Source: Octopus bimaculoides (Eukaryota). From it: a stretch of 64,000 bases of DNA. The stretch spans positions 152,083,213-152,147,212 of the forward strand of contig NC_068981.1 in the NCBI RefSeq assembly GCF_001194135.2. The letters are read 5' to 3'. The position numbers were made by a program, and so were the translations under genes. Under the pieces are notes generated by a model, which saw nothing but the letters and a program-made list of their open reading frames with translations, searched no databases and had not been told where the DNA came from. Positions 48,701 through 63,719 of the stretch are shown here, in pieces; position 1 is the stretch's first letter; each line of letters starts with the position of its first letter.

Positions 48701-51700
48701 GATTCGGCAGGAGAGTTCTTGAAATTTGCCATGTTTTTGGTAAAGGTAAACATTTGTCGGTATTTGTTAGCACTCTCAAAGAAAATGGCTGAGGATTTTG
48801 AATCGGTTTCTCTTAATAGCTCACAAAGAGACAACTGTGCACACGTTTTGGTTTTATTACACCCTCATAAGCATTGCATAGTTTGCATAAGCTTGCGTTG
48901 ATCAGATGATAGTATTTTTTATATAAGTACAAAATGTGCTACGAATAACTTTTTTCTAGTATAATTTGCATAATTACAAAAGTGAGTTAGGGCAAATAAT
49001 GCAAATGAGTCAAAAGTGTCAGCTTCGTGATATACTGAGTGACGCATACAATAAAACAAAAAAGAGCGGTATTAGTTATATCTGTGGGTGTATGTGAGAG
49101 AGAGTGTGTGTGTGTGTGTGTGTGCGTGTGTGTGATAAAGAGAGAGAGTGTGTGTGAGAGAGTGTGTATGAGAGAAAGAGAGTGTGTGTGAGAGAGAGTG
49201 TGTGTATGAGAGAGAGAGAGTGTGTGTATGAGAGAGAGANNNNNNNNNNAGAGTGTGTGTATGAGAGAGAGAGAGTGTGTGTATGAGAGAGAGAGAGTGA
49301 GTGTGTGTGTGTGAACGTGTTTGTTTATACATGCACGCACACCTATATAGCTGAAACACAAAAGGCATATAAAAAATGCATTCCAAAATTTTATTGCAAT
49401 ATAAGAAGCGCTTATATAATAAAAGGAATAATATATATATATATGAAATATTAGCACGCAGTGATAAGCAATACAACGATTGTGAACTAAATTATAAAAC
49501 GAGATACATTATGATATATTACACGACTAGATTCTTCGACGTATAACACTGAATCGCGAAAAATCAACACGTCATTTGCAAAAGAATACTTATATACTAA
49601 CGTCATTGTATTTCTGATTATATTATTATACACCGAGTCCAGTATGTTATTGGATTACACACACTCTCAAATTTTTAATGTAGATGAAGTACCTATTTTA
49701 GAAGCGCATGCCAGCGAGAAATCACATTGAAAAACAATATTTTCGCAGCCATGTTTTGAAGTAACTAAAGATCATTGTCAGATGAAAAATGCTAACTTTA
49801 GTTTTAAAATTTTGAAGATAAACTTTCGTATATTTTGTATTTGAAGTAAAAGAAATATTGTGAAGAGAAAAGGCAAAAGACGTGAAAATAAGAAAAACTT
49901 GATATACTTATAAAGAAAAAGAAAATTGCTTCTACATCAAATATCATCAGCAAACAACATCAAGATACATACTTACTTGCATACATACATACGTACGTAC
50001 ATACATACATTCTTTTACAAATTTCAGCCTTAAAGCTGTGGCCATGCTGGAGCAAGTACCATCACATTGTTTACTATTTTTAAAGAATTCATTAGTATGT
50101 GTAACACGTTAGATTATTGGCTAATAATGAATTGCTGTATTACACCATATTTAATTAATTTGAAAATGTATTTCTCAAATTTTGTAGCGGATTTATTTAT
50201 TAAATGATCACTGACTAGAATTAAATTACCTAATTACTCCTTATTTAATACATTTCAAAATACATTTCCTATCAGAACGTAACCGTCCTTTCTAACGTTA
50301 TTTCAATGTGAATAACCTTTGACATTATGATTTCTCACTTAACGGTTTTACATTTAAAATCAACTGGCCTGCTAACTCAGAATATTCCAGAATGCTATTG
50401 TGATATCCTAAGATATACGTTATTAATTTTTGTGTTTAAACAGCTATCCTTATTGATAAATGCGAGGAGTGAGGCTGGCTATTCCTGTATTACGAATCTT
50501 TGCAGACTCTAAGAACAGCACACTTTTAATTTCATTCAAATGTATTTCTTCATCCATAGAATTGTCGATATAATTGACTGATCCACAGAAAGTGTTGAAA
50601 CGGAATTCTTTAAAAGTTTTCCATGCTAAGGTTATCCTATAGTTTTCCATACTAAGTTTATTCTTTACAGTATAAATGCTATATCATTTGCCATTGAGCT
50701 CTTTATTTTTAGCATATGGGAATGTTAAGTAATTAAAAGATTTGAAAATAAAAACACAGGAGAAAGATTTAAACGCAGTATATGCACACGCGGTCTATAT
50801 GCAAGCTAAATGAATGACTGAATGAAAGAACAACTACTCGTACCAATATTACTGATGAGCATTGATATATCTGAAATTTTAGCATTCAAATTCTGCAAGA
50901 AATTGTTTCCACATATCTTCAATAAAAATGTCATGAAAGAGGGGTGACATTAAGTAGGATGCCGTTCAGCGAGATACTGCTGTACATATTTCCTAGTGCA
51001 TCAAGAATATCGTTAATAAGTTATTAAATGAAAGAAGTTACTGTCACAGGTATTTCACCAATAGAATAGAAAATATCAACAAATTTTCAGCGAATTTAGT
51101 CTTTCCCGACACAGTAGAATGCAAGAAACTGCACAAGGAGACACGAAGCCATCAAAGTGAGACTCAGCAACAAGCAGAAGCAAGAAATCATTAATCAATA
51201 AATAATCTTTCACTCACCAAAAGCAGCTTCCACCTCAGAACGAGTTTCTAGCGAAAAATAAACGTAAATATATACCCTCATTATTTAGGTCACGTGAAAA
51301 GAGTAAATATATTGAGAAAGAAGAGACGTGCTTTTTTTATTTCTTAAATATTACACCGTTATAAACAGTAGGTGGACTTTACAAGAATCGAAAATACTCT
51401 GGGAGAGAATATGTATATGGTTCAAACTTAGAGAAATGTAATTATAGTACAATAAAAAAATATCACTTTACGATTAGATACTTTAATTTATATATAATGC
51501 GAGAAACGATTTTGCAGTCGCTTACCTGCACGAGTTATTTTTTCCGTTACGACCTCTGCGGGATTAAGAAAATATATAGTTTAATATTTCAAAACGATAT
51601 TTTATAAACACTGCACCATTAACTGGCAACTATATTAGAACATTTGTTAATAAACTCATGGCATTTAATCATTCATTCGTTGTAAAATGATTTTACACAC

Positions 51701-63719: not shown

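Follow-up and report, generated by a model that had tools for sequence, protein, structure and literature searches.

A 30-nt microexon array predicted to encode an acidic, probably disordered spacer upstream of tandem Ig exons in a putative octopus obscurin/UNC-89 homologue

We analysed a stretch of 64,000 nucleotides (nt) of the Octopus bimaculoides genome (RefSeq assembly GCF_001194135.2, contig NC_068981.1, positions 152,083,213–152,147,212, forward strand), hereafter the window, in whose numbering positions are given. A scan of the window found fourteen segments of exactly 30 nt on the minus strand, which spell all of the decapeptides proposed in a preliminary description of this DNA. We consider it likely that these are genuine exons of one giant minus-strand gene, most likely obscurin/UNC-89, and that they encode a disordered acidic spacer or spring in front of a tandem array of immunoglobulin (Ig) domains.

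The architecture of the array agrees throughout with that description. Each of the fourteen microexons is preceded by a pyrimidine-rich tract and AG, is followed by a GTAAG or GTGAG donor and is in phase 1-1 (14/14), opening with codon positions two and three (AA, AG or AT) and closing with position one of the next codon (G in 13 microexons, C in exon 10), so that each contributes exactly ten residues. Spliced together, they give 140 codons that are open in the phase-1 frame, with many stops in both other frames. The junction codons are GAA, GAG or GAT (Glu/Asp), the single exception being CAA (Gln) after exon 10, whose final C accounts for the glutamine that had been read at the start of exon 11. 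Exon 10 (last base 55491, donor C/GTAAGT) is the sole array exon that ends in C; the residue starting exon 11 would be Q with exon 10 included and E with exon 10 skipped, and would report the splice choice. The spacer comprises at least 140 residues arranged as (A-B)x3 units of 60 amino acids (aa), with two exon classes, A and B, alternating as strictly in the concatenate as had been claimed, and the motif S-[ED]-V-[ED] present in all seven class B exons. The two full copies of the super-repeat (exons 1–6 and 7–12) are offset by 6382–6812 nt, estimated gap lengths counted in, matching the period of about 6.4–6.8 kb given earlier, and are followed by a truncated third unit (exons 13–14). Introns within units are short (278–954 nt), and the exons are bounded by strong, near-consensus splice sites. 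An nhmmer nucleotide profile built from all fourteen detected no fifteenth member of the microexon family in the window.

Several properties of the sequence indicate that these segments are coding. The strict pattern AG-N30-GT(A/G)AG has 29 matches on the minus strand of the whole window and 3 on its plus strand. When a pyrimidine tract is also required, the interval 45260–64000 holds 13 matches with a length of 30 nt, no other length from 12 to 120 nt has more than 2, and the opposite strand of this interval displays no length peak. Between copies 1 and 2 (six exons each), 18 of 180 nt differ, and our recount reproduced the earlier one: 15 of the differences are synonymous third-position changes and 3 are replacements (chance of at least 15 of 18 differences at third positions, p = 1.9e-5). 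Synonymous divergence (dS) is 0.46 and replacement divergence (dN) 0.022 by the Nei–Gojobori method (NG86), with a dN/dS of 0.05, and the peptides are identical at 57 of 60 residues. The third-position bias and the low dN/dS argue that selection acts on the peptide. Inter-copy identity is 0.88 in exons, approximately 0.70 in the nearest 50 nt of intron, 0.55–0.59 at 51–100 nt and 0.52–0.55 at 101–150 nt (random background for this comparison, 0.51), so the heavy intron divergence noted earlier is real and reaches near-random identity by 101–150 nt; a BLAST of the region against itself likewise confined similarity to islands of 80–200 nt around the exons. Judged from the sequence, the fourteen segments are protein-coding exons maintained by purifying selection on the peptide in the phase-1 frame.

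The terminal pair behaves differently. Exons 13–14 differ from exons 7–8 by one synonymous and five replacement changes, with a dS of 0.07. The intron flanks of these pairs (51218–51555 versus 56959–57326) are, at approximately 70% identity, as diverged as those of the other pairs of copies. The pattern could stem from gene conversion over short tracts, from selection on splicing signals within the exons, or from a relaxation of constraint at the terminal pair.

The composition of the spacer is that of a disordered segment. The first 60-aa unit contains 17 E/D, 10 V, 9 T, 8 K/R and 6 S and no G, L, C or aromatic residue, figures that we recomputed identically, and the full 140 aa are 27% E/D and 14% K/R, rich in V, T and S, and devoid of G, L, C, W and Y (P+E+V+K, 64/140 or 46%; proline, 4%). 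The fraction of charged residues is 0.41 and the net charge per residue −0.14. With a hydropathy H of 0.406, the spacer falls under the charge–hydropathy boundary of 0.462, and the adjacent Ig domain lies on the folded side. A Pfam search with the spacer at E ≤ 1 gave no family reaching its cut-off and listed none that is PEVK-related; given this and the modest P+E+V+K and proline contents, an independent origin of a PEVK-like element is plausible. The preliminary proposal of an independently evolved, disordered spring or spacer therefore holds as regards the 10/20/60-aa order, the disordered-side composition and the lack of a detectable relation to PEVK, with independent origin standing as plausible.

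Downstream, microexon 14 joins the first, divergent Ig exon (starting at 45259) in the phase-1 frame across an intron of 5958 nt, in agreement with the earlier placement of the array ahead of the Ig rod. Within this intron, a 176-nt direct repeat (49389–49564 and 48032–48203, 92.6% identity) is probably a dispersed repeat. The window contains 20 intact Ig exons of 267–273 nt with one domain per exon, all of which start with E or D, end in ...SVE/G and are in phase 1-1. Five degenerate Ig exons without an open frame (35633–35861, 33997–34237, 24737–25009, 23335–23559 and 19100–19363, minus strand) look like pseudoexons. Most of the coding sequence of the window consists of 273-nt Ig exons; only the spacer segment is microexonic, and there is no signal-peptide context.

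The 30-nt phase-1 microexon also recurs as a linker after Ig exons, a feature that the preliminary description did not list. Nine intact linkers with the consensus E-x-P-[AVT]-V-x-E-P-D-T and approximately 13 decayed ones are present, the latter having lost AG or GT or acquired deletions or stops (for example, 32357–32425, 29989–30050 and 19962–20037). Some intact linkers sit behind degenerate Ig exons (23094–23123 and 18851–18880). The 30-nt phase-1 exon is a gene-wide module, not one confined to the spacer, and its recurrence suggests that the ancestral unit of the array was an Ig exon plus a 10-residue linker exon.

Comparison with other cephalopods shows that this arrangement extends beyond the window species. 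The Ig array is 78–84% identical at the amino acid level to fragmentary 'hypothetical proteins' of Argonauta hians and approximately 45–50% identical to a cuttlefish protein. Ig sequence in the European Nucleotide Archive (ENA) assembly ERZ21867824 shares 69% identity with the window and with Argonauta alike, and approximately 52% with the cuttlefish, which identifies its source as an outgroup to the window species and Argonauta. In this outgroup, one locus (L003) carries, in the 6 kb that precede its first, divergent Ig exon, eight strict YAG/30 nt/GTRAG exons, reading EETTDIKTTI, EQRHEAESFF, GESTEVKTVL, EQAHETEVRF, EQEQEVAHFT, EQITEIKPTI, EKHDQAPTLL and DRILEAELSS. The opposite strand has zero such exons, 30 nt is the only enriched length and one frame is open. 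The profile of the window exons matched two of these exons at E values of 1e-4 to 2e-4 and two at 0.009–0.024, and the outgroup spacer resembles that of the window in its charge–hydropathy behaviour. By this comparison, the outgroup and the window have kept the same array position, the same exon length and phase, and an acidic character, and the sequence drifts, which is the usual behaviour of disordered segments. Casein-kinase-2-type sites, tried as a conserved feature, were dropped because they are not conserved in the outgroup exons.

The linkers can also be followed across species. The two Argonauta loci that we compared (L001 and L008) fall within the Ig array or past its downstream end; at L001, 30-nt exons that read ELTVVEQPDT come after Ig exons, and the linker profile of the window matches them at an E value of approximately 1e-10. 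In ERZ21867824, Ig exons are followed by linkers reading EGIIEEQIES, and the distal array is without linkers. In an annotated protein of the cuttlefish Acanthosepion pharaonis (CAHIKZ030000791.1; L007, ~30170–30202), two Ig exons are separated by a phase-1 linker microexon of 33 nt, EAVGDVESDEA. Splicing of such a linker is thus already part of at least one gene model, and the difference between 33 and 30 nt indicates that linker length varies between lineages. Genomic contigs from another octopod (Logan SRR11869390, SRR11869385 and SRR11869384; L004–L006) align over their full length to 14492–15716 at 78–83% identity. Their Ig exon has a mutated donor and their linker has decayed, indicating that exon decay in the array differs between species.

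The identity of the host gene was approached through the Ig domains and the Argonauta locus. The Ig exons are nearest to the sarcomeric I-set domains of MyBP-C, titin and obscurin (PDB sequence matches; I-set, 58 bits). The Argonauta array continues on the same strand with further Ig exons and then an SH3 exon (SH3_2, 30 bits; cut-off, 21.8), and the next gene model, which lies 2.3 kb past the array on the same strand, is a protein of 4853 aa with I-set, RhoGEF and PH domains. SH3-DH-PH after an Ig array is the domain order that marks obscurin/UNC-89 (PMC12812942). From this Argonauta order, in which an Ig array leads to SH3-RhoGEF-PH, we assign the window to a gene that is most likely a cephalopod obscurin/UNC-89 homologue, not titin, on the inference that the array, the SH3 exon and RhoGEF-PH belong to one transcription unit. 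Vertebrate obscurin likewise has its Ig array upstream of SH3-RhoGEF-PH. The SH3-DH-PH cassette is N-terminal in worm and fly UNC-89.

The long introns between units contain further features. Two assembly gaps (59081–59476 and 60656–61326) lie within intron 6–7; with (TA)n on either side of each, they resemble microsatellites that the assembly failed to resolve. Neither gap is crossed by an exon or a reading frame, and the frame is independent of the gaps because every exon is in phase 1-1 by itself. The 1.2-kb piece between the gaps contains a pyrimidine-rich non-coding element of approximately 95 nt (60251–60305) that is colinear, on the same strand, with 52545–52598 in the equivalent ungapped intron 12–13 and approximately 80% conserved; apart from the exon islands, it is the sole similarity between the two long inter-unit introns. 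Its colinearity supports the order and orientation of the gap-separated pieces, and the element could be a splicing regulatory element or a relic. No extra microexon is present in the ungapped paralogous intron, and therefore none is expected in the gaps. Intron 6–7 also holds a 160-aa open reading frame (58421–58903, minus strand), which matched neither Pfam nor any record of the gene collection, and a guess that it was a retroelement remnant was dropped; Pfam gave no match for three other open reading frames either, and no transposon claim is made. Coordinates are collected in Table 1.

Table 1. Positions of the spacer microexons, Ig exons and linker exons in the window.
Feature	Position	Strand	Evidence
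Microexon 1	63690-63719	minus	cag/30 nt/gtaagc, phase 1-1
Microexon 2	63341-63370	minus	splice sites and phase
Microexon 3	62623-62652	minus	splice sites and phase
Microexon 4	62261-62290	minus	splice sites and phase
Microexon 5	61898-61927	minus	splice sites and phase
Microexon 6, final exon of super-repeat copy 1, 169 nt to the nearer gap	61496-61525	minus	splice sites and phase
Long intron at the copy 1/copy 2 boundary, 4169 nt, containing both gaps	57327-61495	minus	exon bounds
Microexon 7	57297-57326	minus	splice sites and phase
Microexon 8	56959-56988	minus	splice sites and phase
Microexon 9	55975-56004	minus	splice sites and phase
Microexon 10, donor C/GTAAGT	55491-55520	minus	splice sites and phase
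Microexon 11, class A, (Q/E)IVRETESRI	55111-55140	minus	splice sites and phase
Microexon 12, final exon of copy 2	54684-54713	minus	splice sites and phase
Microexon 13, opens truncated third unit	51526-51555	minus	splice sites and phase
Microexon 14, last of spacer	51218-51247	minus	splice sites and phase
First, divergent I-set Ig exon, 267 nt, phase 1-1, ending ...SVE	44993-45259	minus	I-set Pfam match
Tandem I-set Ig exons, 273 nt, phase 1-1, 19 intact and 5 degenerate	510-39650	minus	exon scan
Intact linkers 1-5	39141-39170, 36821-36850, 31021-31050, 28685-28714, 27436-27465	minus	
Intact linkers 6-9	23094-23123, 21228-21257, 18851-18880, 13065-13094	minus	

Taken as exons of one obscurin-type gene, the fourteen segments would place in series with the Ig chain a disordered segment of negative charge, serving as a spacer or as an entropic spring. 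Spacer, Ig and linker exons share phase 1-1, which would make it possible to skip any subset of them without loss of frame, and the lengths of the spacer and of the linkers could by design be set in 10-residue steps by splicing; both the spring function and its tuning by splicing are inferences. A more far-reaching version, which we offer tentatively and hold to be doubtful, is that of a cephalopod splice-programmable 'decapeptide ruler' within obscurin, in which the 30-nt module would serve both as an N-terminal acidic spring array and as optional Ig linkers, and combinatorial inclusion would adjust, ten residues at a time, both how long the spring is and how flexible the Ig chain is, tuning passive mechanics in muscles whose working ranges differ greatly, such as those of arm, mantle and tentacle.

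A number of observations weigh against the reading as an obscurin spacer or spring. The assignment to obscurin leans on the Argonauta locus, which is split into several gene models, and SH3-DH-PH falls outside the window. The disorder of the spacer is probable and is predicted from its composition. Neither the spliced 140-aa peptide nor a query joining its final 40 aa to the first Ig domain recovered the spacer peptide in any protein of a 5.8-billion-sequence collection; the same collection also missed the large gene models of the locus, which makes this absence weak evidence either way. Exons 13–14 may be less constrained than the others. The outgroup peptides share at most 5 of 10 residues with those of the window despite the dN/dS of 0.05 within it, and that ratio, tighter than a spring defined by composition would require, hints at sequence-specific constraint. 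Near-consensus splice sites and short intra-unit introns suit constitutive inclusion equally well.

Constraint of this kind leads to the main rival, a sequence-specific binding or phospho-regulated repeat: the exons would be real, but the 20/60-aa repeat could present repeated sites at which a sarcomeric partner or a kinase docks, or could fold on binding, and would have a fixed length and constitutive splicing. The near-identity of the two 60-aa copies at a dS of 0.46, the strict A/B alternation with its invariant class B motif, the 21 S/T-x-x-[DE] sites per 140 aa and the strong splice sites and short introns are all compatible with such a module, whereas neither the peptide nor these sites are kept in the outgroup (3 sites in 80 aa), the composition falls on the disordered side and Pfam has no match. 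We judge this explanation unlikely, yet worth serious weight. The remaining two we regard as very improbable. That one exon or pair is chosen in a mutually exclusive, Dscam-like manner, rather than all being used serially, would fit a tandem array of similar small exons with conserved exon-adjacent intron sequence, but lengths that are multiples of three in a single phase do not enforce exclusivity, two unrelated alternating classes suit additive repeats, and a custom k-mer search found docking/selector complementarity to the exon-flanking windows no higher than in the control. An equally slim chance attaches to the exons not being joined to the Ig array, whether as parts of another gene further upstream or as non-functional remnants (relics or pseudoexons) of a repeat that has decayed. 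The intron of 5958 nt after exon 14 leaves room for it, and decay at the locus is real (the five degenerate Ig exons and approximately 13 dead linkers); all fourteen microexons, however, retain both splice sites and an open frame, the third-position bias and dN/dS reflect selection on the peptide, strand and phase agree with the Ig exon, and the outgroup is arranged alike. The reading as exons of one gene with a spacer or spring remains the one that we favour.

Disordered springs that are set by splicing and tune muscle stiffness are well established for titin and its fly counterpart. If expressed, the present array would represent a separately evolved spring in an obscurin-type gene, in a lineage with obliquely striated and highly extensible muscle, and one of unusual regularity, in which one exon length equals one decapeptide. 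The array would offer a natural system in which to study the co-evolution of exon size, phase and repeat length, the recognition of microexons, and the relation of spring length to muscle mechanics. Exons of ten residues are easily missed by gene predictors, and gene models at the locus are fragmentary: in Argonauta (BAAFZT010000002.1, 29.95–29.99 Mb), it is annotated as at least six models (1829, 199, 209, 364, 181 and 4853 aa).

No paper on PEVK-like regions, springs in obscurin or microexon arrays of fixed length in cephalopods came up in a literature search, and the nearest parallels come from other systems. The PEVK region of titin resembles the spacer in being low in complexity, E/V-rich and probably unstructured, in lying in series with tandem Ig domains and in being encoded by a run of small, single-phase, in-frame exons that arose by hierarchical duplication. 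PEVK exons encode approximately 28 aa, and in mouse many have intermediate inclusion (PMC6300359). The present exons encode 10 aa, and elasticity and alternative splicing are predicted here from sequence. The two also differ in host gene, which is of obscurin/UNC-89 type here by synteny, in the position of the Ig tandem, which within the window lies only downstream of the spacer and not on both sides, and in composition, with a P+E+V+K content of 46% versus approximately 70% in titin PEVK, which is characterised by PPAK or poly-E motifs, the low proline content and prominent T, S and R.

Closer in family, the interkinase region of Caenorhabditis elegans UNC-89 is an entropic spring by force spectroscopy (bioRxiv 10.1101/2020.04.03.023374; PMC12812942). 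Like the spacer, it is a disordered segment within a giant protein of the obscurin family, but it sits between two C-terminal kinase domains, whereas the present spacer is upstream of the Ig array. To our knowledge, no microexon architecture has been reported for that region. In Drosophila Sallimus (I-band titin), alternatively spliced PEVK exons set the length of the spring and thereby that of the sarcomere (PMC12063666). Sallimus is likewise a giant muscle protein of an invertebrate, but its PEVK is encoded by few very large exons (exon 32 alone has more than 4 kb of PEVK-coding sequence) and not by a 30-nt array. Runs of symmetric microexons are shared with the micro-exon genes of Schistosoma, in which symmetric microexons of 3–81 bp are separated by long introns and yield combinatorial variants (bioRxiv 10.1101/2023.06.21.545858). 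Those are small genes for secreted proteins that consist almost wholly of microexons of varied length, in contrast to the fixed 30 nt found here within a giant Ig gene of intracellular type. A length quantised to whole peptide repeats is also seen in the 54-bp exon unit of the fibrillar collagens, which was kept through many duplications and is unrelated to the spacer in peptide, fold and family. Set beside these systems, the array is notable for its exact 30-nt quantisation, the reuse of the same module as inter-Ig linkers, its conservation in an outgroup and a home that is of obscurin type rather than titin.

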